64,000 bases of DNA, taken from NCBI GenBank assembly GCA_051294905.1, contig CM119386.1, forward strand, positions 5,890,001 to 5,954,000, written 5' to 3'. This document shows positions 9,846-63,206 of the stretch, one piece after another. The notes beneath the pieces are model-generated. The model was not told the origin of the DNA and did no database searches. It saw nothing but the letters and a program-made list of their open reading frames with translations. Source of the DNA: Botryllus schlosseri. Taxonomy: Eukaryota. Position numbers and translations under genes: made by a program. Each line of letters begins with the position of its first letter. The stretch's first letter is position 1.

Positions 9846-10247
9846 TGGTGCGGAGCGGCTCTCTGGTCTGACTCCGAGTCCGGATTTTAGAAATGACCGT
9901 GATCCGGTCCGAAAAAATCCGATAATAATCATCCACTCACAGGAGGGTATTGAATATTGATTGAAACAATGCAAACAGGACAGTAAAAACCCAAAGATCA
10001 AACCCAACCCTTATCTGAATTTATTATGCCAACTTGGTCTTATCATGTGGTTTATTTCCATGAACGTTTCTCTTTAATAATTGATTCGAGGGTGGAAGAG
10101 GGTAAGGATGTCACGCTATTAGTAAAAAGTACTGATCCGGCTCCGCTCCGACTCCGGCCATATCAGAAAAAATACTGACCCGGCTCCGGCCAAAATGAGA
10201 AAATCCGGCCGAATATCCAATCCGTCTCCGGTCCATGCTCCGCCCTA
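9846..10247. mobile_element. MITE with TCCGG/CTCCG subterminal repeats
   Basis: Imperfect TIRs TGGTGCGGAGC / GCTCCGCCCTA. Both ends are dense in actccg/atccgg motifs around an AT-rich core. Possible decayed TSD AGTTG(AAA/CAT). Confidence 0.6.
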
Positions 10248-10699
10248 AGTTGCATCGTAAATATAAGTGAGATGATAAACCTCGTAAGAAAAAGGGACAA
10301 ACATATATTCGATATTCGTGGTGTTATTCTATTAGTACGAATCGCATCCAATAAAGGAATTGACCGTTGACAATTGCACATTTCTTGGCCTTGGCACATG
10401 TCTTTCATGATATTATACAATGTTGTGTTCCAACCTTTGGCAATCTGTGGACTACCTTGAGATGGGAATTCACGTCTTGTTCCCCAGGTGCTATTGGGGC
10501 TAATAAAATAGACAACAAAACTTAGTTATGCCAGTGTGAGTGTATGTTCCACTTGCGCCTGGCAAGTGCGTTTTGAATGTCTCACCATAGATAATTCTGA
10601 TATCTACAAGGTGTTAACTTGCACCGCAAACCGCTAGTGTCCGTAACTGACGATGTCATTTAAACGACTATACACTTGTACAGAGTAATGCAAGAGTTT

Positions 10700-12030
10700 C
10701 ACTTTCCCTCACAACACCAAAAGACCTACTGATAACTATAAAGATGACGCAAAAACACCCTCTCAGCTAAATCGCATAAACTTTAGCGTAGAGCTATCAT
10801 TTGATACCATAATGATAGGTCCGTCCGATTTTACTACTTGACTTACGCCGTCAAATACGGTCGGTAGTTTTTGCGATTGGTTTATATTTACTACGATTCT
10901 ATATTTAGAAACCAGTGACTTGATCACCAATCCCGACGGTTTATTGCGGCTTAACGCGGTGCTTAGACTGCGTAGTTTTTATCGGGTTACCGAAACCTAT
11001 CAATTTTCACATATATCTTTAGAAATTATATTTATGAAATGAAGGTGTACGAATTTCTCCTCTGCTATAGTTTGAAACTTTGTTTCTGACCCGACGGGAA
11101 TTTGCTCGCGTTGATTATCCCCGAAGGTAATTTTATTTCCAAAGTTCCCCAAGTGGTTGTCGTGTCGAGATAGGTGCGATACTGAAATAATGTTAGTATG
11201 GTTTACATTGATGTCTCGGCGGGATGCGTTTATGCGCTAATTTTTCCAATTGCTTTTCGGTGGTAAACTCCTATGAAACCGTGATCGAGATGAAGTTATC
11301 GCTGTCCCAATAGGATTCAATTTTAGTTTCTTTCGGTCACGACAAACGCTCGATTTGTGCTCGTTCTGGTAATGGCCATTAAATCAGACATTGACTGTGG
11401 TGGTACAGAAGGCTTATTGACCTGAACTCTCAATAATCTTCTAGGTGTAGGGGATCTTTCGTTTGTCTTCAAAACTGTTTTACCTCAGTGAGCACGTCCT
11501 ACCTATTTGAGTATAGTTATCGGAACTGATGTAAGCTGTGATAACTGAATAAGTCGATGATGCATCTTTCTATAGATATGTCTATTCCATAAGCATCGTT
11601 TCAAGGCGAGATCTGCCCGAGGTGAAGACAATGTCATTGCTATCCTGATTATAGGAGGGTGAAATCGAATCAAAAATTTTATATTATGAAATATTAATCT
11701 ATGTCACTGAATTGAAGTTCCAGTAGTATTTCGAAATAAAGGTATCTTGAATGAAAGTGGGGAGCAGTATTCACGCTCATTATTGTAGCGACATCAATTT
11801 GACTTTTAAGGGATCTTTGAGAGCGTGACCGTGTTGCCCAAATCATTTAAGATGATTACTGGAAGTTTACAACCAAAACTGCTTTGCCCAATAAGAAGGT
11901 ACAAAGGCCCCTGAATGTGATTACTCCCGTATATGCGCTCAAATCAATTGATTCTATATTCGAACTGTTGACACGATAATTCCAGTCTCCCTGATTCCGG
12001 TGTGCTTGTTTCATTATCCGGAGAATTAAC
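10700..12030 (-). mobile_element. Heavily decayed non-LTR retrotransposon (CR1/L2-like) ORF2: APE endonuclease, linker and start of RT
   Basis: Motif remnants occur in the expected order on the minus strand: PVIILNDL (11836-11862, cf. VIILGDFN), ISPSYNQDSNDIVFTS (11618-11665, cf. PT...DLVFT), FSYHSL (11532-11549, cf. SDH), RVRNKV (11076-11093), GVFASSL (cf. G.FP..WK). Many stops and frameshifts; boundaries approximate. Confidence 0.45.
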
Positions 12031-12780
12031 GGAGACCGCAGAGAATTATGCTAAAACAAATATGAGAACAATTTAGTGATTACCGTGTGTGTATCATGTG
12101 CATGTGCATAATCCTTTTTCATAACTACGAACGGAGAACTATACCTCAACTAAATGGAATATGAATGCACTGTTTGATCACGAGAATATGCCGACTCTTA
12201 TATCGCGAAACGCATCGTACTTATCCGTGTCTGGTGGAACCGTTGATTGCTTGAGACACGCCTTATTTCGTTTTACGGATATAATCCTAATTGTCCGCAC
12301 ACGCAGATCAACAAGTTCCTAATATGGTGCTTCGCCGGTTATCGTACACACACAGTTGCGAGCAGTTGTTTGTTTGGTCGATGTGGCTCGGAACCTAAAC
12401 ACTCGATGCGGATCCGTGTTGTACCGTTCCTATCTGAAGTACAATTGTTTGTTTATGTTTCCGACTGCGTCGAGGCTATTTTTGTGACGATGTTGTTTCA
12501 CGATTTTTCTGTGTTGAAAAGTTAAAATCGAGCATATGTGGTGTTTCGCGCTATTTTTGTCTCTGTGGTCAAAGTTAATACAGTGGACAGTGCGGATTAA
12601 TCATTTTCGTAACTGGAAATGGTCTGTCTTAGCTCCTACCGTGAATAACATCTCAAACTATAACGGCTCTTCCATCTTGCATTGTTCAGAACCTGATTTT
12701 CATTTTCCCATATTATAAGGTTCTGCACAGTACACATTCGCTTCAACTTTAATTTTTTGCATCTGCAATCGAAACCGGAA

Positions 12781-12806
<26 letters not shown>
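12781..12806 (+). repeat. (TG)13 microsatellite
   Basis: Read directly. Confidence 0.97.
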
Positions 12807-12811
<5 letters not shown>

Positions 12812-13072
12812 TTACAGCCTTTGATATCGCACTACAAATGCTCATAAATTCTTTCCGGACCGCAGCCGTTATCTCCAACTATGAAGTTTCAAAAGTAAAC
12901 CACCGGGAGTTCAAAATCCATCCGCACATTTGAATATAGTTGTTGCACGATGAAATGCATCACGTGGCGCCACATTAATACACCCCATTGACTAAGGTGA
13001 GACACGAGTCATATCTGCTGGGTGCGTGGCTCAAACCCTTGTTATTGTGATGTAACATCAAAGGAGACTGTG

Positions 13073-13229
13073 ACATCGGGCACTCGGTCGAGGTGGACAT
13101 CAACTGGTTGGTCGTTCGGCATCCCCCTATCTGTTCATTACATCGCATTGTGTGTCTTGTATATCGCATTGTACATTGTGTGTGTGTCTTGGGCAGATGA
13201 AAATATAATCTGACGATTGATTGATTGAT
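13073..13229 (+). repeat. Interspersed repeat with (GATT)n tail, copy 1 (SINE or LINE 3' end)
   Basis: Shares acatcgggca, ggtcgttcg, a 28-bp core tgtgtcttgtRtatcgcattgYacattg and a gattgattgat tail with 45999-46140. Confidence 0.7.
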
Positions 13230-16200
13230 CCATGGTTGCACCAGCATATATGTATTAAGTATTAGGTATGTATGTATACTAGTATACTATTAACCGGTCG
13301 AAAGAGAGAAAAAAATCGTAATGGTATCAAAGAACGATACATGTACATTGTACAAATGCAATTATAGATATGGAACAGAAGAAAACATTACTACCAGCCG
13401 AATATTACTATACTAAACCCTGAAAAGCTTACACAGATTTACCTCCAATAGTTTATTTGTTTTCATGTGAAAGAGTCTTCGAATTAAATGAATTATGCTG
13501 CAATAAACGTATGGCCTTGTAAACAATATTCAAGTTTTGTACCGCCAGTCAACTATTCAGGTTTTCATTACTGTAAATTCCCATTATTATACGCCGCATG
13601 TTTAGATTGCTCGGTTGTGGTGTTCGCCACGTGTAAGGAGTGATTCACGGCATTCAGAAATTTGAATGCAAAGTTTGCAGCTTTCACCTAGGCTAGATTG
13701 ATATCACCGGCCTTTCTCAATACCGCACCATACTGCAACGCTGATTACCCATAATACATTACCTGTCACCTTAATGACAGTAATTTGACTTAGCCATCGA
13801 AATCATTAGAATCGCATGATCATATGTGATGTCAATTGTCTTTGGTGCTATATCGCCAGTAGAACATTGTGTATACAACAACTGCCATTTGGTATCAATA
13901 ATATTGAGGTGAATATCACGTTGCCCTCCACATGATATGCGTGAGCTAAAATCCGACGGGCGTCGATTTGATTTTTGTTACGCGTTATTTGTCACTTGAT
14001 ATTTTAAAGAGCTTGATTTGTCAAGGGCTAACAAATATTGTTATGACAAAACTATTCTGTCATCTGTAGACATCACAGCTTTAATCGTTTGATTGCGCCA
14101 ATTACTGCATTATACGATAATCGTGACAGATTACACTTCGAATGCAATCGATTATGACCCATAAAACCACAATTACTATACTTCTGAGTCACTTTGACCA
14201 GATATTTGTCAAGTTCATCGAGTAATAAATATACGAGTTCGAATTAGTTTTGCCGAATTGAAAGCATTCTAATCCAAGATGGGGTGGGCCCAAACCTGAC
14301 AATATTGACTGACAATATCTTAGCTCGAAAACTACTAAAAAATTTTAAATCGTTGAATGGTCGTGTGGACATTGGTCCCTACACTGAAGACTGAAATATT
14401 TTCCAATGACCCGACCCCGAAATGCGGACTTACACCTCTGATTGGAAGCATACCCGGCCAGTTGTTGATTGTCAGAAAAATCATTTGGAATGTTTGTGAT
14501 TATGGAACCGATTATTTGACGATTTTTGCGTAATCGCAAATCAGTGTTCAAATAATATCTCCGCCCCTGTATATATGTAGCGCAAGCGTGTACTCACCAG
14601 CTACATACGAAGTTTACCGTGTCGTCACGACGCAGATAAAATCTACAAGATACCATCCGCGTTTATTATTCGCGGCTTGGTGTTCCCGGGCACATGCTTT
14701 TGATGTATTTTAAATTGTCGTGATCGCGCGGTCTGGGCTGAAAAACAGAATTATCTGAGAAACAAAACCAAATTGATTTGCTGACTGGATTTAACATGCT
14801 CCGCACAATAGATTGTTTATTGTTTCTATTTTTGAGTGAGATTGTGTCAACAAAAGAAATCCTCAATCCGCGGAACGAGGCGAGAAGTTTTTCGCGCTCG
14901 GGTGTCGATTGACAACGGCGATTGTGACGGAATCGTGTTTTTCTTCGAAATAGCTCTCTTTCTCTCAGATATTTTTTCCGCGTCCATTTTTTTCGCTCCT
15001 CGAATCTCGCCGCTGTCACCGCCACGAAAAGTATCGGCACTTGTCAGCCAGTAATCTCCTCCAGTATATCCGCTGGCTTATTGTCTCAATTACCTGGATT
15101 ATGGTATTTGTTCTCGGCATCGTTTACGAACCTGGTGCCTTAATCGGTTCAGAGCGCAAGTCTCCATATATTTTCGTGATAGAGTCGTCCTGAACTAGCG
15201 GAAGTTGAGCGTCTGGGCGGAAATACGACATTCGGACATAGGCATTCCCTTTTTACCTTGTTTAGGAGGCCCTTCTTTCTTAAAAGATCTTGTCTGTTCT
15301 GTCGGTTCGCGCAAAAGAAGGAACGCGTCTCAAATCTGACACATCACATACATTTATGGGAGTATTTTCAGAACATGGCATTGAAAATATCCACGGATCC
15401 ATCCATTTTGTGGTGTTATACCTTGTTACGTTTCCGTGTACTTTTCCACCATAAAGAAGAGAAAACCGCGGTGCGGGCGCGCTGATGTTATTTGTCGACT
15501 TACTTATAAAATTCCTTTCTTACGCAATAAATGTCTTCTTTTTGTCAGTCATATCGCTTATCGTTCTTACAACCTGAGTGCAACGGGATGTGTAGTAATC
15601 GCATTTGCGTTAGCTATAAGCACATCCACTACTATCTTACAGAGAGCTTCCGATAAAGAGAAATGAAATATACGCAAATATAAGTGTTAATTGGTCACGT
15701 CATCAACCCGAATACGTGATGCCGTTTGAAGTCCTATTGTCTTTGCTGAACAATTTGGCGATGCACTGAATGGTATCTGATGATATTAAGACCGGATATT
15801 ATAATAAGATTTATATAATAAATACATTTTATGGCTACCATATATGACGTTTTCTATCACTCAAACGACTTTATACTCAATTTGAGTCATGAATAGCCAT
15901 TAGAAGGATAAGTAGTTGGATATGCAGACTCGCCGCGCAGTCGTCTTCGCGCAAGCCAATTTCCACTTACCAAAATGCCTTCGATAATTCGATTCTAAAA
16001 TTTTCGTAATCGCCCGTGCATACTTCAGTGAAATCGTTTCCCGGCACAATTTCCAATCTGAATGTACAACACCTGTCAATCATCGGCGCGGAGCGATATG
16101 ATTCCCACATCAAAGATGTTTAGTAATCTTCACCACTCATGACAAGTCAGTCTGACTATCTTGTTACTGAATTATTTGCCTTACTCACCTATGACTTCTA

Positions 16201-16782
16201 CTCCCCATTGTTTTGCTCTTCAGCCTCTGGGTGCTACTGTGATATACTTAAGCTCCGTGTTATGTTCGGCGTGACGCGATGGGGACGCAGCCAGATTTCG
16301 CACCTGATGTAAGCCAGTAATGCATCAATATTCTTTATGTATGACGTGGTAATTTATGGTGGGTTACGGGCTATTAACATTGTGAGTCGTTGACATACGC
16401 CATATTTTCATACCCCAGAAGAATCCACATTTTTTCGTCCCTCGACGAATCAGTTGCGATTTCAAAATTTACCAATATGATTGGTGTCATCACGAGTTAG
16501 TGGTATCAAAAGATGTTGATTTGCCGAAAAGGAACACAGCCACTCTCACGTTTGCATTCCCATGCGTTGCCCATTAACATTTAGTCACTGCATAAGTTTT
16601 AAAGCTGTAGCAACACTATAGTAAGCTATGTATCGGTACGACATGTATATGAGCTGAAACATTGACAAATGTCGTAACAAACTTCTAGGTGATCAGCATA
16701 CAAAATTAACGTGCACTACGGGATACATGCGCGGACATGATTGAAGTAAACATTGAGAGGATTATCGGTTGCAATTTGCTGT

Positions 16783-16981
16783 ATATCGGACGTGAAAGTA
16801 TCGTCCGAAGTGATTGAAGTAGGATCGAGTTCTAAGGTGATCGCAGTTTGATTGGAAATAGTTAAAATGTCATTTCAAAGATTTTAAAGTCATGTTCTGA
16901 CGATATTCAAGCACACTGCGATCAAACTAAGCCCATCGATCCTACTTAAATGATTTCGGAAAATAGATTCTTGTCCGATGT
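16783..16981. repeat. Foldback / MITE-like element with about 70-bp inverted arms
   Basis: The arm at 16783-16850 is an imperfect reverse complement of 16912-16981 (core aagtaggatcga...tgatcgcagt), around an AT-rich spacer. Confidence 0.7.
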
Positions 16982-19900
16982 CCGGCCCAACCAATTTCTT
17001 ATCATTCGGCAGATATACAGTTATTTCACACCAATAGAAGTAAACTTGCATGATGCCAGCGACTATTTATCTCGTATGGGTCCTTGATATGGTGATCATT
17101 CCGTAAAATATGATACAGCTGATGTAATGTTGTCATATCCCTGTAAATCTTGCGAATCCATGCAATTCTTGCTCCTAATTTCTCTGAATATGCAGGTCTC
17201 ATCCACAACATCAGCGCGAACGCGTGAGAATGGTCGTAGCGTATACTCAATTTTGGCTTCCTAATAGAGAAATTACGTATTTGGCAGCGGTTCAACGTCA
17301 ATCAATCATCCTATTTTATCAATCTGTCACATTCTATAGTTGTTTTCGAGGGGTGTCGTATACCGACGGGATCTTGGATTTTCCACCTCAGACCCTATCC
17401 CATTGGCAAAATATGACAAAGAATCCATTGTTGTTACGTAAAGCAAATTTGCTACCTATGCAAATTGGTTTGATGTAAAACAACCCTTGGTACACCTTCA
17501 ATCCAATTGTCGTATGTAGTTTTCCAAAGCTTATCCTATGCGTTGTGTATGATATATTTCATGTATTATATCGTTGATGCATCATCTCAGTACATAGTTC
17601 ACCCATCTTAGTACCTTCTGTGTTTTCCTCGTCGAAAACGACCCATATGTCTGGTCTGTGATTGTTTGTTCCCGGATGACTTGAACACGTAAGGGAGTTG
17701 TTGCTCGTTTTGGCCGATTTGTTTTCACCGAACCAATGTTGACACCGGGCTACCATACGGTCCCTCGCACAATAATTTGCAGGGATGATTGGTGTTATCA
17801 TATCGCGAGTACTAAATCCTCCGTATGAAATACATTGCTTGTGAAAATAGTCTCAGCAGTAGTCGAGGGTCTGCTTTTCGATTTATTATGACCGGTTTTC
17901 GAGCTTTGTCTCGTAACGCGAACTGATATGCCGCACTGTATCTGTCACCTTGAGTGATTGATGTTCTTATCGTCATATGCTTAGATTGCGTATATACATT
18001 ATGTCATGATCATTGGACGTTCAGTAACCTACTCATTAGACTGATTTTTATGGACATCCCAGCAACAAATCTTGAAACTTGAATCTAAAAATGCCCCAAA
18101 AGAACTGTTGGGGAGCAGTTCACTTTCTTCATTATAATGACATGAATAAACCGTGTTTTTAAAAATACGGTGTAGGAGAAATAGATGGCTTGTTTGAAGT
18201 ATATAGACGGAGGTTGCATTGCAAGCCGTCCATATTACTAGTCTTGTCATATTGCTTCGGAATAATATTGTTGATCCAATCAATGATAGTGGGTACTTCT
18301 CCTCTCGTGCAAAAAGAGAAAATATCCCAATAAATGTAGGTAACTTCGTTAGCTTGTTAGTTTTACTGGGAATCACGGTCACTTAATGATCATGTGAGAT
18401 TCTCATATTCTAAGTGTTAAGTGTTGTAGTCACTAATCGTGAATTACTTGATTTTATTCCCGAAAGAAGGAATGATGAAACTAACTGTTATTGCTTTGTT
18501 ACCATACTATATCTTCTGTACATCTGCTTATTGGATTAATATTCTACCCCTTCCGCAGTTTCCTTACTAAACGCGTTTGGAATGTGAAATAAAAATAATA
18601 TTGGCGACCTAGTTTTTTGGCGGGTTTCTGATTGGTATGATTTTGAATTCTATCTGGGTACCTTTGTTACGAGTCATGCGATAGATATTACGACCGTTTC
18701 CCTAATTAATGTAGGAAGGTATGTTTTTCGGTTGTCTTGTCATGGGCATTGCGCATTAATGTGATTGGAATTTGTTCACGATGTCTTCAAGGAGTTGAAA
18801 TGATTGAACTGCTAAAATATTGTATATTTATCATCGATTGTCGCGGCGATGTGAGCGGATGAAAGATTGACGCAAAGTAACCCAAACAACCGGATCCTAA
18901 CCAGATATTCCATGTCAGATGCGGTCTTAATTGTGGTAACTATATGCAGATTTTATAACGTTTTCTAAAGCACTACTTTGTTTTTCGCACTTCGCTATCT
19001 CAATGTTCACTCCTTTAGCCATTGCCTCAAAATATTTTTATATTGACGGACAGTCCATTTAAAATTTTAGAATGTAATGTTGTAGGCTTTGCGTTACCTG
19101 GTAAACGCTGGATGAGCCCATCATTTCGACAAGATGTTTTGTTGCCGAAATAAGGTCTGTATATGTTCTCAGCCCTCCTACGATGCAAATGTACAAACGA
19201 ATTGTTCACCAATGTAAAAGGGTGTGGTTTCACGTTACCATGGATTACCACAAAGCAAACTTGAAATAATATATCTACATATAAAGATACGATTCGCCCG
19301 TTGACACTGGAAAGTGATCCACTGACGTAAAACCTATATTACTTTCGATTACAGTTCATTAGAATGAAAAATGTTGCTTATTTATTTTGTATTAGAAGCC
19401 GTGCTAGTGAGTGGTACATTCTATTCGAATGAAGTACTTTCTGAAATTGGCCTCTGACCTTATTTTTACGCGTTGATTGGATTTATGAGTCATCCGACCT
19501 AGATTCGAGTGGATATAATTTGCGAATCTTGCGGAAAATGGCGGAAGACAGCGACATGAATTTGAACCCTCTCCAACAAATCATTTTTAAAGCGGTAATT
19601 ATTCGTTGTTTATAGTATAGGAAGATGCGGAACGGAGTTCACGTATATCTCGTCGACAATATCCGTAGCTTGCCCATTACATAATTACTAATATCGTCGG
19701 CTCGCTTGTGGTATCCCAGTCGTCGAGGTCCTTGAATTCACGTGATTTTACAATCTCCAAAAATGGGCTGGCTGGTGTTGATTGCACAATGCACATAATC
19801 GCGCCATACTGTTGAAACGTTTCAGAAGCCCAAACGCGATACCAGGCGCTCGGCCACGCGCAAGGGAGGAAATATTCTCGCTTGATATCTCAGCGGAGAC

Positions 19901-22900
19901 CGCGCGAATTCTCGCAGTAATTACTGCCACCAATCGTCGACATTTGACATGACAATTGCGTTATCCAACGCAAGAGTGCTTGTAAAGATATCCCGTGGCC
20001 GCGTACTCACGGCCTGGTATTTTTCAATGATTTGAATATCGGCTCCGAACTGTCTGTGATGTTGATAACTGCGCTAATATCAGGGAGGCGATTGTAACTC
20101 ACTCGCTATCGGCGGAATTATCCGGGTTGGACCGCATTCAATAGTTTTTGCTCCAGCTGTCGCATAAGAATCTGCATCCAGATATAATAGTGTCGCGGCC
20201 TAGGTAGTATCGGGGCCTATGATACTGTAAGAAAGGCCACATGAAATTCCATCACGAATTCTTCACCGACATTGGTGTGCGTGCATAATACGCACACCAA
20301 GAATTATTTAACCACTGCATAACGGTGTCCTACCCCATACTATAAGCAGGTCGAACCGACAGCTGAACAGATTTTCACTACAATAAAAAGATCGTCCCTG
20401 TAGCTTCAGCTAACTACGGAATCATTCTATAACATTTCCAACGCGGCGACTAGCTCAAAAACTTCACCTCAAACGTGAGAGGTCTGGTAAAGAGTAGTTC
20501 AATCACGTTACTGTAGCTTGCCTAATACTATAAGATGGTAAAAACGGCAGCTCAAAACATCGCAGCCTACCTTCAACTCGAACACTCGCTTGCATAACGC
20601 CAATACCCCTGGTATAAGAAGCGAAAGCAAAACAATCGCCGATTGTCACGTCAAGAGGAATCGTCGAATCAAAAGGATCGCCTCTACAGTGTCAGGCGTA
20701 ATAGCGAATTTCTGTTTGTGAGCGTCGGCCTGTTAGCTCTTGCAAGTGTAATATGCCATTTATAGGGCCGTGAATATCGTAGGCCCCGGTAGTATTTATC
20801 TTCATATCGATCGACGTTAACACTTGTATATTGTATCGTATAGGGTGGATATTCTTCTCCACCATCTCGATATACATGAATGGCAACTTGTGTCTTCAAT
20901 CTGAGGGGGATTTGTCATATCGCAGTCAAATTTGGGATTGGCTGTTCAACTGCGGCACTTTTCGTTGATAATGAACTCTTACTTTTAAGAAGTAGGAAAG
21001 TACTGTTCCATTCGCGCTGTTCTTATAATCTACTTATTTTCCCAAGGATTGTTAGTACAAATTGTGAATTCTCGTGGCTTTTACCATTATTCCTTCGATA
21101 GATTTTGGAAGGAATCTATTGCGTGACCATTCTGTTTTACGAATCTTTCCCCGAAATCACATAAGCATTTGCATACATCAAAGGATTGGTATTCTGGAAG
21201 AGACTCTGTCCTTTTTTGAGTAATTAGTCTCAACATTGTTTTTCAACGATTTTATCAGCTCTCACACGTAGGCGCTCGGAGGATTAGTGCTGCGGCGAGA
21301 TACATTACCGTACGCTTTCGCTGTAAATGCCTGCATAAAAGAGTAACCAAGCAGTCATAATAAAGCGATTCAAATGATGTGCGACGACGCTTATCTTCTA
21401 ACTGATCGTGACCTTTTGACCGTCGCTGTTGTGCTACAATATAAGGAAAGCAAACTTCGCGTCATAATACACCTCGATGGAAACTGCGCTTTATTATTAG
21501 ATCTAGCAAGCAAACTTACAAACAACTTTGCTGCTATAATTGTGGAATTTGTTGTTGAGCAACTTCTGTTGCAAATAGAAACACAAATAAAACTTACAAC
21601 CATCCATTTAGAGAAGCAGCCTTACATCCAGTTTACAAAATCATTGCCAAGCGGGCGTTACCTGCATCAATACAGCCCCCAAATCTCAAGACCAAGAAGC
21701 CGTGTGATTGAGATAGCGATCGCTATCATTAATGTCACGCTATAGATCAGTATCTGCAGTTAACTGATCTGTAGTCACGCGAAGGGCAATTGGGCCAGTA
21801 GCATTGACCTACGCCCTTCGTGGTTTTTGCGTCGCACGACACTTTTGACATGTGTCTACTGGGTGAGATTGGCACTTGGCGAGATAACGTCACGTCCGCC
21901 GGCTTGATGACGCAAATGCGTGCGAGATTATCTTGAGGTCACAATGTGACTGGGGCTGATCAAAAGAAGTAATTCGATTGTGGTGTATCAAGAAGCATAA
22001 TGCAGTTTGGATTGTTGGTATGAATGTTACTTACTTACGCTGTGAAGTCTATTCCTTGTTCATCGCGCGAAGCATTATTCGATACTAAATGCTCAGGAGC
22101 GATGCTACTGTTCAAACATTATGCCACAGTATCATTGACGTAACTCCGTTTGCAATTTGAAAATTGACAACTCAAATTCTACTCGCAACAAGCGACAAGA
22201 TATACCTGCAGGAAAATGACACTGCATTAAAGTATTTCGTGATATCGTGCGCATTTTGGTGAAGGTCTCGTTACTCCTGTTAGAACTGCCAATGTGTGTC
22301 TCAATTTTGAAGAAAATTCGTAAAGTGACAAGCGCTTCGGCACCGGTATCGTCGTTGTTGTCGAGAGCTGCAAATTCTTCAGATACCGCGAAAAGCTACA
22401 CTTGAAGGGGTCTCGCCGCTCGGATTTTCGCCTGGAAATCGTACGGTCTGCACGCTAAATATCTCGGCCGAGACTTGCTCGACATAACAGGAAGCCCGCT
22501 AGGCTGATGATACTGGAATGGGGGAATATCCGCCAAATGAGTTTCGGTAATGGCTCTGCGGAAGAACCGCGCTCTGCCTTCCCGGATTTACTAACAACAC
22601 CACTGTTACACTCAAGTCAACAAATTAGCAGTTACAATACTGTAGTTGATCGTTACGTTTACAGTTGGGCATGCTACTCCCGTATTCTTTGATTGTCTTC
22701 GATTCTACGATCTGATGTTATGTATGCATTCTTCGGATGCCTGCAGACCGATGTTGTCTTTCAACAACAACGAAATGTGATACGGAATTTGATTTTATCA
22801 AACAACCCATACGGTCGCCAAACGATATAACGATATCCCCAAATTAAAATGTTGGAACCCGAGAACCATTCGTATCCAATGTGCGAGGGTGCATATTTCG

Positions 22901-40182: not shown

Positions 40183-40318
40183 NNNNNNNNNNNNNNNNNN
40201 NNNNNNNNNNNNNNNNNNNNNNNNNNNNNNNNNNNNNNNNNNNNNNNNNNNNNNNNNNNNNNNNNNNNNNNNNNNNNNNNNNNNNNNNNNNNNNNNNNNN
40301 NNNNNNNNNNNNNNNNNN
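40183..40318. other. Assembly gap (136 N)
   Basis: Run of N. Confidence 1.
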
Positions 40319-55700: not shown

Positions 55701-56169
55701 GCATTGAGATGGGAGGGGTTATACGTAATACGTACTTCACAAGTCAGGCGTGGTATATCCACATCCATATGGGTCTCCGATACATGTACTCAGAGTGATG
55801 TATGCAACACGCAGCATTTGTTTTTTACTTGTTGAAATGTCACCACGACAATAAATAGCGTAGGAACGCTATTTGTCAACTATGTGGTGGCGTGAATCAT
55901 GGAAATGGCCGCTAATTCGCTGATTATTGCCGGGATTTGTTCGGCTTTGGACACGTTCCGATCGAAGTTTATGTTTTGTTGTCATGTTTTGCAATAGAAT
56001 TGAAATCAGTTCATTCTTTGTTATTTTGAAGATACGCCGTAAGAAAAGGCTTCTTTTCTTACGTCGAATCCGTGTTTCAAACCCGCGTTTTCATTTTAAT
56101 CAACAAAATATGTGAGAAATAACTATAAGCTGAAGCATGGTAGACTTATTCAATATTATTTTATTCCAG

Positions 56170-56361
56170 AGGCAGGGGGCGTCTACCACCGTCTTCGTGG
56201 CCACGGCCCGCGAGCTGGAAGGCGTCGGCGGGCTGTATTTCAACAACTGCTTCACTTGCCAGACCAGCGAAACCGCGCAGAGCAGAAATCTTGCGTCGCG
56301 ATTATGGAAAATTACCGAAGACTTGCTGTCAAATCGCTTGACAGCGTCGGTTTACGATTGA
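56170..56361 (+). CDS. WWOX: WW domain-containing oxidoreductase, terminal coding exon (63 aa plus stop)
   Basis: After a good acceptor: RQGASTTVFVATARELEGVGGLYFNNCFTCQTSETAQSRNLASRLWKITEDLL...*. This matches human WWOX exon 9 from recall ([30 protein letters not shown]...LW.LSE.L). YFNNC distinguishes WWOX from RDH-type SDRs. High GC3, phase-0 start. Confidence 0.93.
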   Translation, partial: RQGASTTVFVATARELEGVGGLYFNNCFTCQTSETAQSRNLASRLWKITEDLLSNRLTASVYD

Positions 56362-56597
56362 CGGCAGGCTTATTTTAAGTGTAGAGCGTCCCGTTTCGTT
56401 ACACACGTACAACGCTAATTCGCTTGGATATAGGCAAAGGGCATCTGTGTTTATCTGTCGTGTTTGCTGATTAGTTGTGGTATCTTGTTCATACTGAGTG
56501 TATTCTCACTTCGGCAAATCGCACTTGTTTGTCATTAGCCGGCTCTTCTAATTTTGTATGCGCGGTATTCTAAGTCCGTTGTCGTTTGCAGACTTAA

Positions 56598-56603
56598 AAT
56601 AAA
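56598..56603 (+). terminator. WWOX: Candidate WWOX polyadenylation signal AATAAA
   Basis: First AATAAA after the stop, about 240 nt downstream. Confidence 0.4.
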
Positions 56604-57547
56604 CGGGACACAATACGAATCTACGGAAAATACACTCTCGCAGTGTTCGTAGATAGACCGCCAGTGAGAAAAGGTTTAGTGTATGGGACGTGTATTTTGA
56701 CAGCTGCTTATGCTATATTTGTGGCGGCATGCGTTGTTTATGCGATACACACATTACACACGGTTACAATCCATTGTGTAGGCTCGCGACGAATCGAGCA
56801 AACGAGAAGCGGATGACGCGAATCCGTGTATAAGCCCGATATTTAGCGATTAAATCGCGTTTCTGGTGCTTGACAATCATTGCACGAGTCGCAATGCTCG
56901 CTAAATTTATATCAGAACCTCTATTGGATCTACAGATTCGTTTAGCCAGATGGAGTACATTCAGGGGCCGTCCCTAACAAACTACTACTTTTTCCGAGTA
57001 CTTAAGTAGCTTTTGCGTACTTGCAACTTACTCAAGGGGTTCTATTTTTAGACCTCTTTCAGCTCGTCTAAACAGTTTTAGTCAAAACTACTTACTCTTA
57101 CCAATCTGGATTTTGTAAAGTATAAAGTGGTTTGGGGATATCCCTGCATTGCTTTTGTGTGAAACTGTCACAGTAGCTGGGCGAAAGAGTCCGGTATCGC
57201 GGTAGCTCAATAAACTATCGAAGATTGCACCGATTCTTGGTACCGTCAGTAATTTTGCGCGAGTCGCGAAGATGCGCCCTGCAATTTCGAAAGTGACAAT
57301 CTCCGAATAACTGCTAAAAAAAACTAGAAGTAGTTTTGAATTTTCTTTGTAATGGAATAGAAATATATGGCATTACTTCTACTTGAATTATCTCATGAGT
57401 GCACGTCGGTATGAGGTGTAGGTGGTGGTAACTTGTAAGGCAGTGGTTCCCAACCTGCGGTACGCGTACCACTAGTGGTACGCGAAGGTCTTCAGGTGGT
57501 ACACGAGTAGATTCCTTTTTTTTTAACCGAAGGGAATTATTAGTTAA

Positions 57548-58129
57548 GGTGGGGTTGAACACAAAGATTGTTCTCCAATAAACTTCAGGCTTAGCGTGCC
57601 CTCCTCGTACTCAACTCTAGCTTCTCACGCTATTCCCCAGCTGCTAATTTTACCTTCTACGCGGGAGTGCGAGCAGGGATTTTCATCTCTGATAACCATC
57701 AAGTCGAAGAAACAAAACCGACTTGTTGCGCCTATGCATGACTTTCGATGCGCTGTGAGCAAACATATGCCACGCATCGACCAGCTACTGCAGTGGTTCT
57801 CAAACTGGGGGGCGTGAAAGCTTCTGAAGGGAGGCACGAAGCTCCGGCCAACTGAAAAAAAATTTCGTGCTTCGCGCGATTTACCTCCAATTCATTGTTT
57901 TTGCTCTGTGTATAGTCCTAATTGAATATTTAGGAATTCTCTTATCAACTGTCATAACCTTCCATGCCATCAAATTATTCGTTGAGATTGCCAGCATTCT
58001 GGTTGCATTTTGTGATATGAGGATAAGGGGGTTGGCGAAATTTTTCACTATGATAAACGGGAGCGTGTCTAAAAAAGTACGGGAACCGCTGAGCTAGTGG
58101 AAAATAAGCAAATGCAGCCATCGCATTAA
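57548..58129 (+). pseudogene. hAT transposase C-terminal dimerisation-domain remnant, interrupted by a MITE
   Basis: ...SYSTLASHAIPQLLILPSTRECEQGFSSLITIKSKKQNRL...DFRCAVSKHMPRIDQLL. After removing 57791-58099 it continues in frame as ENKQMQPSH*. This is the typical Charlie/Buster (ZBED5/SCAND3-like) C-terminus. Confidence 0.9.
57791..58091. mobile_element. hAT MITE nested in the transposase remnant
   Basis: Ends CAGTGGTTCTCAAACT / CGGGAACCGCTG; TSD AGCTACTG / AGCTAGTG (7/8). Confidence 0.85.
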
Positions 58130-60322
58130 AACAATTGACGTTTGTTGTTTGCTGTTATTTCATTATGTTGTTCTTCTTATGATTGGTGGTGATAAAACAA
58201 TCCCATGCATCTCATTAACCCTGGCTGATAATGCCTAGTTTAATAGTATTTGCTATTACGCCTCGCATACGTCAAATACGTCATTATTACGTCATAAACG
58301 ACGGAAACATTTTTGACGGCTTTCAGCGCTCGCAACTTATGTAGGTGGTACGCTAGCGCTGCGTAAAACCTCGAAATGGTACGTGAGTGAAAAAGGTTGG
58401 GAACCACTGTTGTAAGGTAACAAACATTGCCAAATGTATATCATTTGCACTCTCTTATTTGGAAAGCATAGCAGATCAGTGTTTTGCGTCCCATGCTAAC
58501 CTTCTGTATTCTAGCCGCACCCGTACTAATGACAGACGCGTATCGTATATTCGGATATAGCTCCGTTGCACACAAGTAGTAACTTAACTAGCGTCGACTC
58601 CAAGCCATCCATAATGTCTTCTCAAACCCGCACAATCGCCATATCATCACTGCGCCAGAAGGCAACGATTTGTCACTCGAAAAGACAAGGGCTGTCAATA
58701 TCTTTGATCCATGCCTTCAATCGTCATCATATTTATTTTTCTTGAGTTTCCAATCAGGCGTCAGTTAGTACAATCCTTCACGGAGGATGGTGTGATATGA
58801 CTGTAGCCCAAGGACTCGCAATGTGTACTACGTGTATAAGTGAAGCAAATGGTTCGTTTCGATGTTGCTCTTGCAAATTTAAGGAATTTTACCCGTTATC
58901 AACAATTGGCTTTCGTACTGTCACCAGTTACAACAATCGCCCGTTTTGCCTCATATTCCATTTTGTTCAACAATGTCCTTCGGCATGCGGATCGTCGGTA
59001 TTAGCGGTCCGGAGTAGCTCCAAGTTTATCGATAGTGTTCGCCGTGCCATGCGAGTTCAGATTAGACTGTGGCTTTTGAAATACGCATCTTCGGATGTCC
59101 GTATGACTTCCCGCTCGTATTTCACCTAAGACTAGAACCGAGCCATAATACAAGCCGAGATAGTCGAACCGCAAGGACGCTGGTGCGTTTCCGCGATTGA
59201 ATAAATCTCGCCGCCGAGGAAATATGAGCCTGCGCGCGATCCTGGATGACCCGTTTTCGCGGACATTTTCTGTCGCAGTCCGGTGTAGGCGCAGATAGAT
59301 AATGTTACACTCTCAGCGTCTGAACCGGGCAAACACACTCCAAAATAGTCAAGTTGAAAAGTGAATTGCCTGTTTGCACTTGTATGAAAATGCACATCAT
59401 CCAACCGCAATCAATGTACACCGAATGCCTTAATTCAATGTCCACATAACCTTGTAACGTAACGCCTGCAACAAGGGACACTGGCCGATACTGCTGTCAC
59501 GAGCGAACCGCAGTCATTCGCCGGGTTTCGATACTGCGTGATTGCGACAGCAATCATCACACGTCAAACATCTTCGCGACGTGTGTTTCAGCGTGCGAAG
59601 TCCGACCTGCGTGGCGTACATGCCATGTGTACCGATGCACATGGAAAATCGGAAATCTGTATGCCTTAATACCGACGTAATGAAATCCTTTATTGTCTTG
59701 GTATATGTAAGCCAAACTTACACTCACAATGTCAGATATAGTGACATTTTTAGACGATTGTTGAGGGGTTCACATGGTTGGGCTTTTATACACCCCCGCA
59801 ATACGAATGCGGCAGTAAGATACACTGTATAAAGTGTGCAATGTACTGTAGAGTGCACCCATAACGCATGACAGCAAACTATTGGCATCCAACCAGAGCA
59901 CAATAACAATTGGTGCAATTTCCAATGTATTACACCCAAAGAAACGAAAATGAATTCATCACAGAGTTTTCATAAACATATTCGAAGGTACTTCTGATTT
60001 TGTTTTTGGGAAATAATTGAGTTTTTAGTTGATTTTTACATTGGCGCGAATTTCCTTCCTGATCTCTTTATCTAAGTAAGTTGCCTATTCATTTACAGTG
60101 ACAAATCGTCTGGTGAAGTTCAGATCCATCCTCATTTCTCATATGTACGATGTAACTTAAAACGAAATGAATGCATGATATTCGTCTCTCCATTATCTGA
60201 AAGTTGGTATTGCCCTAAATGCGCCACCGTGCTTATAGTTTCCAATATCCCCCTATAACTCTCACTCATTCTTGCATTTGTTTGACGCAAGTCTGATAGA
60301 CCAAATATTCATGGAATGAACG

Positions 60323-60328
60323 TTTATT
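60323..60328 (-). terminator. Maf: Candidate Maf polyadenylation signal AATAAA
   Basis: TTTATT on + in an AT-rich tract about 850 nt past the Maf stop; other candidates lie further downstream. Confidence 0.3.
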
Positions 60329-61169
60329 CGAAATTGAATTAAAGATAGAAAAGGAAATGAATAAAAATATTGCGAGGACAAGACTACAAATTACTATTAG
60401 CGTTCACACGATGTTCCAAACAATAATAAGCAAACAAACACGGGCACAATGATTAGGATTTCAATAAATAATTTTTGGAACAAGGGTTATACCGGAAAGT
60501 GACTTTACGTCGAGCATATCCAGTCTTACATTCAAAGTCATGGTATTGAGGTTCTTTTGCCGGCCAGCTCTGCTTACTGCGGCCAGCGCGAAGAGCTCGA
60601 TTGTGTATAACAAAGCGGTGGACGCAGGCAAAATGGCGTCCGCGAGATTCAGGTATTAGAAATCGTAACCGTACAGATTGGCGGAAAACAATAGCAGCAG
60701 CAATTATTATCACGCAACACAGGGAGTTTGATCTAAACTTTTTCCAGGAACTATATTCTCTCCAACATGTAGTCTGGGATCCGTCGACTCCCGTTTCATA
60801 ATAATAGCAGCATGGTCGCATGAAGAAAACATCTTGAATAAATTATTTTGGAACTATATGCCTCTAAATTAAATAACTCGGACCGCGCGCACAAGCACGG
60901 TCGAGGTTCCCCGCGTACGTATGCCGCGCCAAATGTTTCGCTGTGTCGGAGTTCTTCTTTCGGAAGCAAGCAGCCAAAAACGAATGTAGTTTCCTCGTAA
61001 GATTGTAACTTGTGGCTAGAGTCGCATGTTTTTTTCGCGATATGCAGCGAGCCGTTCACAGCCGCAGAAGCAGCAGCGCAATCTCGGAGTTTCACCGTCT
61101 GTCGACGCAGTTCCGAGCCCCCACTCTTGAACTTTTGGATTATTCTCTTGAATATTTCTCATGCGTCTC

Positions 61170-61361
61170 TTACATATTGTACATCTGGTGCATCGGCGTG
61201 GCCATTTGATCGCGCTGCATTTGTTCCGAGTGCTGTGCCGACTGCTGCTGATGGTGTAACCGTTGCTGGTTCATGAGGATCGACTTGAGATGTTCGTACT
61301 TGCCGCGATAGTCTTCGCGCTCTTGCAGAACGCTATTGAGTTGGTGTTGTAACTGAGCGAG
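61170..61361 (-). CDS. Maf: Large Maf bZIP factor, last coding exon (zipper C-half and Q/H-rich tail)
   Basis: Acceptor ttttttttttgacAG, then LAQLQHQLNSVLQEREDYRGKYEHL...MYNM*. Completes the Maf heptads, including the Tyr heptad; phase 0 matches the previous exon. Confidence 0.92.
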   Translation of the reverse strand, partial: LAQLQHQLNSVLQEREDYRGKYEHLKSILMNQQRLHHQQQSAQHSEQMQRDQMATPMHQMYNM

Positions 61362-61857
61362 CTGTCAAAAAAAAATCAAAAACTGTAAATCGTCGGCGGT
61401 CACCAGATGGGTGTTGAGCGAAAGATATCTCGCGGGGGGTTGCACAGAGTTTCGCAATCATCGCTGGTTTACATGGGCTGTTCGCTGTGCGGCTCATCAA
61501 TTCCAAGCAGCCTTTTACGCGAGGAGTTACTGCTCCCATATCGCCAATATTTACTCAAACCGGCGGCCTCTACTATGCGTATTATCATTGGAGCTTGGTG
61601 TTTTTCTAGGCACCTACTTCGTGCCAGTAAATTATTATGCTTTTCAATCAATAATTAACTCGACTGATAAGTTCACTGCGTACTGAACGGTGTCGGCGTT
61701 GCGGGCGATGCATCATAAGTAGTAGGTCTAATATAATTTGGGATGTTTGTAAGATAATGCGCTATAAATAATATTTCAGCACAATACCGTGAGCTTAAAA
61801 TTACAGCAATCGAAAATTACGACCCACTGCAAACGCGTCTCGGTGAAGACAGCTTAC

Positions 61858-61990
61858 CTTTCTTTGAAGATTTGTTTTTTCGTTTTCGAGCATATTTTTC
61901 TGCATTACTCTTTTGCTCCTGCAGGACTGGGCATATCCGCGGTTTTTCAGCGTTCTCCGCCTTTGTTTGAGCGCCGTTATTTGTTCTTTG
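61858..61990 (-). CDS. Maf: Large Maf, basic-region exon (133 nt)
   Basis: ctcgtatttcAG ... AAG|GTAAGC. (S)[50 protein letters not shown] is the large-Maf basic motif (small Mafs have YAASCR). Confidence 0.96.
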
Positions 61991-62265
61991 CTGAAATACG
62001 AGAATTATTGGTTTACATGGGAAACTCAACACCGATCATAGCGTTCGCCGACACAGCTTCACAGAAACGGTCACTACATTGACACTATCCCTCATTGTTC
62101 GCCACGATGGACAGCACACTGGACAACCCGATTTCCAGGATACTTAAGTTACCAATCGCTTTATCGCGAAGAAGTCCATTGATATTTGTGATTCACTTAT
62201 GGAAAGAAACGCCATTCAAAGACCAAAAAATATTCGCTACCAATAGTTACGTCATGACGACTTAC

Positions 62266-63206
62266 CTCATTCCGCGCAACCGTCTATTGAGATCTCTGAC
62301 CGATATCGATATAAGTTCGTTGTCGGGTAATGCTTCGGAGTCACTCAAGCTTTTGGGCGAGTGACAATTCCTTGATCCATTCATGCACTTCTGACTCCCC
62401 TCCATGTCATCGCCATGTTCGCTTGTCCCGGGGCTGTCGTAACTCCAATTGGAACACGACATGCCGCGGTTGAGAACGGTGTGTTGGCCGTGGTAAGATC
62501 CGTCATGTTTCCTTGTCATTTCTGCGAGTCTATATTGCGTACCGTCGGGTAGGCTTGCGGACCTGTACGCTAACGGCGGATTCGGCGAGATGCATTGCGT
62601 CGTTGGGTATACTCCGGCGCAAGCAGCAGTTACGTTTTGCATGGTTTGATCGATCTGATAATGGTTGAAGCGGTTATCTGCAGTGGTTCCAACCGAAGGA
62701 GCGACCGTATATCTTGAGTAGTCTTGTTCGGACTGCTGTGTCATCTGAGGGAAACTGCCACTTACAGTTGCTAATATTGCATCTATACATTCTTCTTCTG
62801 TTGTGTCACATATGCTCCGCGATTCATCCACTTGGTTCTGGGACCAAAAGTTCTCGCAATTGTCAATTTCCTGCTTCTCTGAACAGTGAGTCATTTCCGG
62901 GGATGAAGATAAAGAATGACAGTTTTGCGGTGAGCCCGATGGACTTGACTGGTGGGATCCCGGCTGGTAGCAGTATCCATCGTTCATATTCGGATTTGCA
63001 GGTATTTCATCGGCGGGGTAAGGCTCTTGCTTGACTAAAGACGAATTAGACCGCGAAAATGCTGACCCGTACGGACTATTGTCGGAGTGAGTATTCATCG
63101 GTGATCTGTGGGGTCCAACGAACGATGCAACGTTATAGACAGCGATAGATTGGGCGTCCATCTCAGGTTGCGAGTCTTCAGAAAGTTCGAAGTCGTAATT
63201 AACCAT
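62266..63206 (-). CDS. Maf: Large Maf, first coding exon (transactivation domain and extended homology region)
   Basis: ATG at 63206 (MVNYDFEL...) to PDNELISISVRDLNRRLRGM, donor AG|GTAAGT. The spliced CDS is 941+133+192 = 1266 nt (421 aa) and open throughout. Confidence 0.92.

Follow-up and report, generated by a model that had tools for sequence, protein, structure and literature searches.

Gene content of the window

We analysed a 64,000-nucleotide stretch of the Botryllus schlosseri genome (contig CM119386.1 of assembly GCA_051294905.1, positions 5,890,001 to 5,954,000 of the forward strand), hereafter called the window and numbered from its first letter. The window contains a complete large Maf gene, which is expressed, and the 3' end of a WWOX orthologue that converges on it. 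The terminal exon of WWOX lies on the plus strand and the Maf gene on the minus strand, tail to tail, with 4,808 bp from stop codon to stop codon. The two transcripts do not overlap, and their ends are approximately 3.7 kb apart. A preliminary description of the window had claimed this tail-to-tail arrangement, with the stop codons 4.8 kb apart. It was borne out, and its coordinates were exact: position 56170 is the start of the WWOX exon and position 63206 is the ATG of the Maf gene.

The terminal exon of WWOX

The terminal coding exon of WWOX (56170–56361, plus strand; 63 codons and the stop codon) was delimited by homology, tblastn, phylogeny and RNA. The acceptor ttattccag/AGG at 56170 opens its reading frame, and the stop codon occupies 56359–56361. 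The 3' untranslated region (UTR) extends over 56362–56620 on the same strand and contains an AATAAA signal at 56598–56603. It was drawn from RNA contigs that stopped at 56533 and 56599, with the depth dropping past 56600; the exact end at 56620 is a predicted one.

A HMMER search with the 64 residues of the exon retrieved 535 proteins (E ≤ 0.001), the best of which were mostly short, single-exon open reading frames (ORFs). The best full-length match (P0022, 415 aa) carried two WW domains and a short-chain dehydrogenase/reductase (SDR) domain, and its residues 349–404 matched the exon. When P0022 itself was used as the query, 1,467 proteins were found, and nearly all of the named ones among the 120 listed were annotated as 'WW domain-containing oxidoreductase'. 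The listed WWOX proteins that aligned with the exon (118) did so with their C-terminal residues, approximately 57 in number (about 347–405), and the best were 50–58% identical to it. The motif G-x-YFNNC was present in the window exon, in most of the top matches and in the WW-bearing P0022, whereas lower-ranked SDRs without WW domains mostly had YF[A/S/T]DC or a similar sequence and were 33–50% identical to the exon. A search of the ESM Atlas with the exon returned 'SDR fragment' only.

In a maximum likelihood tree, whose 63 columns give it a modest resolution, the window exon and its copy from a diverged relative (described below) were nested in the clade that united all 17 WWOX rows (support 80/76). 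By path length, the named rows nearest to the window exon were vertebrate WWOX. The RNA contigs of two runs started at 56169/56170, as did six raw reads of another run. The loose 5' end of the RNA (TTC CTC GTA AGA CCA TTC ACC AAA AGC CT(G)) encodes FLVRPFTKSL, the WWOX sequence directly preceding the exon; P0022 has FVRPFTKSLAQ at this position. This splice evidence settles the exon at 56170 as WWOX. The last WWOX intron interrupts the gene at the same place, approximately residue 347, in oyster, Lingula, Owenia, horseshoe crab, millipede and mayfly. The exon had been described beforehand as WWOX rather than as an SDR of the RDH/DHRS type, and its place inside the WWOX group of the tree agrees with that assignment. 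Another SDR as the source of the exon was rejected on the basis of this placement and of the RNA that joins the exon to one encoding RPFTKSL.

Two further observations concern this exon. Five reads of one raw RNA run (X24) departed from it at 56320. In the representative library, a protein of 498 aa (P0003) contained seven stretches resembling the C-terminal exon of WWOX.

Structure and expression of the Maf gene

The Maf gene (63206–61170, minus strand) consists of three exons with a spliced coding sequence of 1,266 nt, encoding 421 aa, and all its introns are of the GT-AG type. Exon 1 (62266–63206) begins with the ATG at 63206 and encodes the N-terminal region and the start of the extended homology region. 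Its frame comprises 313 codons, ending in ISISVRDLNRRLRGM, and is followed by GTAAGT. Intron 1 (61991–62265, 275 nt, GTAAGT to CAG) was placed by its splice sites and by a loose RNA end. Exon 2 (61858–61990) encodes the basic region and is followed by GTAAGC; like exon 1, it is supported by homology, RNA and the mRNA of the relative. Intron 2 (61362–61857, 496 nt, GT to AG) follows from the splice model and RNA. Exon 3 (61170–61361) encodes the leucine zipper and the C-terminus; its translation starts with LAQLQHQLNSVLQEREDYRGKYEHL and runs to the stop codon at 61172–61170. An RNA joint and the mRNA of the relative support this exon. The 3' UTR (60305–61169, minus strand) contains AATAAA at 60328–60323. 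RNA contigs from two runs spanned 60352/60354–61361, stopping just short of this signal, and the end of the UTR at 60305 is again predicted.

The joint between exons 2 and 3 (61361/61858) was present in two RNA runs (X1, X2). For the joint between exons 1 and 2, a loose RNA end at 61992 was identical to 62268–62297. Additional support came from the relative, in which the reading frame of a Maf protein of 425 aa (P0391) is unbroken on a Logan contig of 1,825 bp, indicating that this contig is derived from mRNA. P0391 aligned end to end with the spliced Maf model, reading through both junctions with 81–87% identity, and the alignment of its DNA with the window fell into exactly three blocks (63216–62266, 61992–61858 and 61366–61167). 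In-frame stop codons were present upstream of the Maf ATG in this mRNA. Both introns of the window gene lie inside the bZIP domain. The Mafs of oyster and Owenia, which are located next to WWOX, and that of Argonauta are uninterrupted, so the two introns look like gains in this lineage.

In raw RNA run X24, two sets of six reads fitted the window only over 61167–61224, and both flanks continued with letters foreign to the window. Overall, 87% of the aligned reads of this run continued into unlike sequence. The anomalies of run X24 may be due to a divergent haplotype or to a library artefact.

Identification as a large Maf

The spliced model has a Maf-type bZIP domain and the extended homology region, and approximately 290 residues lie N-terminal to the latter. 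The basic region reads GYAQSCR, as in MafA and MafB, whereas MafG has GYAASCR. Against solved protein chains, exon 2 scored 54 bits with MafB, 52 bits with MafA and 49 bits with MafG. P0391 matched the Pfam model bZIP_Maf (PF03131) with 99 bits over positions 1–91 of 92, and its domain scores were 101.7 with MafA, 100.2 with MafB and 90.3 with MafG. An alignment with large Mafs of oyster, limpet, scallop, spider, frog and bird pointed to a shared N-terminal motif (VNYDFDL versus YVNDFDL) and to an invariant tryptophan in the activation region. The window Maf does not have the C-terminal SSPE motif common to the other aligned large Mafs. The Pfam model Maf_N (PF08383) matched neither exon 1 nor the large Mafs of molluscs. 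A search of 5.8 billion proteins with the exon 1 protein found a single cluster of relatives (81% identity), of which P0391 is a member, so the N-terminal region of this Maf is lineage-specific.

We conclude that the bZIP gene is most probably a large Maf, from comparisons in which MafG stood for the small Mafs. The preliminary description had likewise called it a large and not a small Maf, which accords with the GYAQSCR region and with scores about 10 bits higher against MafA and MafB than against MafG. A small Maf was considered as a candidate and rejected because of the N-terminal region of about 290 residues, the basic region and the ranking of MafA and MafB above MafG.

Integrity of the junction

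Contigs of DNA from a different haplotype, recognisable by many single-nucleotide polymorphisms and indels, tiled positions 56100–62099. In the diverged relative, a single contig of 7,444 bp (SRR25569784) bears the last exon of WWOX and Maf exon 1 on opposite strands. An ORF of 88 aa (P0002) covers the WWOX exon of this contig and is 73% identical to that of the window; P0001 on the opposite strand corresponds to Maf exon 1. Between them lie two short ORFs, at the places where Maf exons 3 and 2 are expected. The spacing is tighter than in the window, with approximately 1.5 kb between the flanking ORFs. Coding sequences of the relative and the window are 71–81% identical at the nucleotide level, and their UTRs are no longer alignable.

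This independent contig with both genes argues against a misassembly. A faulty junction had been named beforehand as a result that would overturn the pair; it is excluded by the contig of the relative together with the tiling contigs of the other haplotype, and a misassembled junction between WWOX and Maf was rejected on these grounds. More broadly, the pair could be an assembly artefact or a case of mistaken identity, with a wrong join, another SDR or a small Maf in place of the genes named here. That the window holds a single WWOX exon and that Maf_N fails to match Maf exon 1 would both fit this explanation. It is largely refuted by the two sets of DNA contigs, by the RNA and tree placement of the WWOX exon, and by the length of the Maf N-terminal region, the GYAQSCR motif and the higher MafA and MafB scores, and we consider it scarcely credible.

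Conservation of the pair in other animals

For other animals, we inspected the 10 kb on either side of the genes for WWOX or Maf in a sample of molluscs, a brachiopod, an annelid and arthropods, with cnidarians, echinoderms, hemichordates and amphioxus outside the sample. In Crassostrea virginica, WWOX on the plus strand (10001–17666) was followed, 4 kb further on, by a bZIP_Maf protein of 325 aa on the minus strand (21745–22722). In Lingula anatina, WWOX on the plus strand was followed by a G protein-coupled receptor (GPCR) gene and then by a bZIP_Maf gene, both on the minus strand, which indicates that the pair tolerates an intervening gene in brachiopods. The gene in between encodes a seven-transmembrane receptor and is located at 15459–16798 (L002), on the Maf strand. 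In Owenia fusiformis, tblastn detected an ORF of 360 aa on the opposite strand, 7.8 kb downstream of WWOX, which matched bZIP_Maf (PF03131) with 71.7 bits. This ORF (L003:30712–31794, minus strand) was absent from the called genes, and its basic region is divergent (GYAMNCR). The locus tags of WWOX and Maf were consecutive on the same chromosome in Mactra antiquata and Patella caerulea. For Haliotis, Argopecten, Mercenaria, Littorina and Pinctada, contigs of equal size suggest that both genes may be on the same chromosome.

Three mandibulate arthropods, one horseshoe crab and one octopod did not show the pair within the 10 kb inspected. A compact WWOX was followed by genes other than Maf in Tribolium, Cloeon and the millipede Chamberlinius. 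In the horseshoe crab Tachypleus and the octopod Argonauta, nothing was found within 10 kb, and tblastn detected no partner. Linkage has been lost in at least some arthropods. Among molluscs, one of the groups in which the preliminary description had proposed to check adjacency, the pair was convergent in C. virginica, adjacent by locus tag in Mactra and Patella, and not within 10 kb in Argonauta.

On human 16q23, WWOX (plus strand) and MAF (minus strand) are convergent and hundreds of kb apart. Dong et al. (2009; Synorth, PMC2745767) described the linkage in vertebrates, with WWOX as a presumed bystander in the regulatory block of MAF. The convergent pair in oyster, brachiopod, annelid, the relative and vertebrates dates linkage and orientation to at least the origin of bilaterians, and the pair goes back at least to the last ancestor that protostomes and deuterostomes had in common. 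The earlier proposal that the linkage is ancient is supported by the same set of lineages (for vertebrates, PMC2745767).

A search of the literature found no paper naming the WWOX-Maf pair outside vertebrates; the supplementary tables of microsynteny studies were not covered by this search. Papers on sea anemone and sponge, synteny papers from 2026 and a preprint on MAF evolution from the same year did not mention WWOX. The pair is not named in the main text of Irimia et al. (2012, PMC3514665). The invertebrate pair may well be present in the supplementary lists of microsynteny surveys.

The spacer between the genes

The spacer contains a high-copy repeat block of approximately 1 kb (57395–58409, no strand assigned), recognised by its DNA word depth, which reached about 1e5 in one DNA run. 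The ends of the block are of the type CAGTGGTTCCCAACC, with direct and inverted copies. In one DNA contig, 29 other letters stand between 57394 and 58410, which shows that the insertion is polymorphic within the species; the other-haplotype contigs that tile the junction lack the repeat. Apart from the repeat, RNA coverage between the ends of the WWOX and Maf transcripts was essentially zero.

These properties bear on the idea that the two genes are functionally tied together at their 3' ends, whether because they are transcribed towards each other, because they share termination or insulation, or because their transcripts overlap in antisense. The tail-to-tail orientation is indeed the conserved feature, and the spacing in invertebrates is short (4.8 kb in the window, 4 kb in oyster and approximately 1.5 kb between the flanking ORFs of the relative). 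Nevertheless, a coupling of this kind is unlikely because the 3.7-kb spacer is silent and tolerates a polymorphic repeat insertion. The gene lying between the pair in Lingula and the hundreds of kb that separate the human genes also speak against it, and we regard this explanation as very improbable.

The last WWOX intron

Upstream of the WWOX exon, the window consists of the 3' part of the last WWOX intron (1–56169, plus strand), which was free of genes according to tblastn, RNA, and ORF and Rfam scans. Motif scans and tblastn with full-length WWOX matched only 56170–56358 in the window. The letters of the upstream exon, as known from RNA, were absent from the whole window, even when three mismatches were allowed. 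Since the exon joined by RNA is not in the window, the last intron of WWOX measures more than 56 kb. The exons for the two N-terminal WW domains and the SDR catalytic core (TGxxxGxG, YxxxK) are accordingly expected beyond the window, over 56 kb upstream. Besides Maf exon 1, only five ORFs of at least 130 aa were present in the window (132–156 aa), and the Rfam scan of the window gave zero matches. A run of 136 N (40183–40318), representing an assembly gap or a masked stretch, lies inside the intron.

The WWOX genes of oyster, Lingula and Owenia are compact, with an overall length of 3.9–13 kb and a last intron of 0.3–1.2 kb. In human, the last WWOX intron measures several hundred kb. A very large last WWOX intron beside Maf is found here and in vertebrates, and not in the protostomes sampled. 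It is possible, though in our view doubtful, that this intron is a shared and functionally constrained feature of tunicates and vertebrates, with the regulatory landscape of Maf already inside it in their common ancestor. If so, there would be a regulatory reason why the human intron that harbours FRA16D has stayed so large, and the long-range enhancers of Maf could be dissected at the tunicate locus, in an animal that can be electroporated, within a landscape only tens of kb long.

Maintenance of the linkage

According to a published model, the enhancers of a developmental gene can sit within or beyond its neighbour, so that selection acts against breaks between the two. Irimia et al. (2012, PMC3514665) reported 595 ancestral pairs of this kind. 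Only 197 conserved pairs were present in Ciona, the fewest among the species compared, and the pairs retained in tunicates mostly combined a developmental with a non-developmental gene. The introns of bystander genes were approximately twice the length of controls, and randomised gene orders gave almost zero conserved pairs (PMC3514665).

We favour, with a probability of roughly 60%, the explanation that the convergent WWOX and large Maf pair, inherited from at least the bilaterian ancestor, has been kept together by the target and bystander logic of a genomic regulatory block (GRB). The long-range regulatory elements of Maf would lie in or beyond WWOX, mainly in its gene-free last intron. A break between WWOX and Maf would sever Maf from part of its control and would be selected against. 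The pattern by which GRBs are recognised, a developmental regulator linked with an unrelated gene across distant lineages, is what was found here. We infer that Maf regulatory elements may be located in the WWOX intron and may preserve the linkage; such a cis-regulatory explanation, which the preliminary description had also put forward, is plausible.

Several points weigh against this explanation. At the window itself, the regulatory support is circumstantial, consisting of a last intron that is over 56 kb long, is free of genes and abuts Maf. In the protostomes with a compact WWOX (last introns of 0.3–1.2 kb), the pair is kept all the same, so a giant intron filled with enhancers is not a general cause of the linkage. 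Moreover, Tribolium, Cloeon, Chamberlinius, Tachypleus and Argonauta did not show the pair within the 10 kb inspected, which indicates that any constraint is dispensable in some lineages.

Similar considerations underlie a serious rival, namely neutral retention, in which the adjacency was inherited and the genes have merely not yet been separated, without any functional constraint. The compact WWOX genes beside Maf in protostomes give no sign of an extended regulatory landscape, several arthropods have lost the pair without obvious consequence, and the spacer of the window tolerates the polymorphic 1-kb repeat insertion. Neutral retention would, however, have to account for an identical orientation in at least four phyla and in vertebrates (PMC2745767). 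It would also have to account for the persistence of the pair in a tunicate, a group with only 197 conserved pairs, and for the near absence of conserved pairs from randomised gene orders (both PMC3514665). We therefore consider neutral retention unlikely and retain the GRB explanation as the preferred one.

The significance of the locus lies first in its age: the WWOX-MAF neighbourhood is at least bilaterian and not a peculiarity of vertebrates. The pair has also persisted in a lineage whose ancestral gene order is reported to be mostly scrambled. In human, the same neighbourhood comprises the fragile site FRA16D, the breakpoints of the myeloma translocation t(14;16) and the MAF regulatory desert. 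If the enhancers of Maf are truly located in the last WWOX intron, the locus would be a compact, practical model of a bystander gene locked to a developmental regulator, with a last intron of more than 56 kb as compared with several hundred kb in human.

Comparison with known systems

The closest known system is the MAF GRB of vertebrates on human 16q23 (PMC2745767). It involves the same two orthologues in convergent orientation, and in both cases the non-developmental gene WWOX, with a very large last intron, is located beside the gene of the developmental transcription factor Maf. The human genes are hundreds of kb apart, whereas the stop codons in the window are 4.8 kb apart. The vertebrate block is defined by conserved non-coding elements, while the window locus is known here from its genes and transcripts. 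A further difference from the vertebrate block is that two introns interrupt the bZIP domain of the window Maf.

The pair also resembles those that Irimia et al. (2012, PMC3514665) termed conserved ancestral microsyntenic pairs (CAMPs). These likewise combine a developmental transcription factor with an unrelated gene in several phyla, are retained in a fast-rearranging lineage and include a bystander with a long intron. Most CAMPs are arranged head to head, in contrast to the tail-to-tail WWOX-Maf pair. The lophotrochozoan pairs of Crassostrea virginica, Lingula anatina and Owenia fusiformis share with the window the order and orientation of the genes, a spacing on the scale of kb and the site, near residue 347, at which the last intron interrupts WWOX. 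They differ in their compact WWOX (last introns of 0.3–1.2 kb), in their uninterrupted Maf frames and, in Lingula, in the GPCR gene.

The WWOX-Maf pair described here is thus a real, though not unexpected, case of a gene neighbourhood conserved since ancient times, a known phenomenon that involves no new principle. To the vertebrate block and the published ancestral pairs, it adds an RNA-verified pair in this lineage and in a diverged relative, and direct evidence from oyster, brachiopod and annelid.

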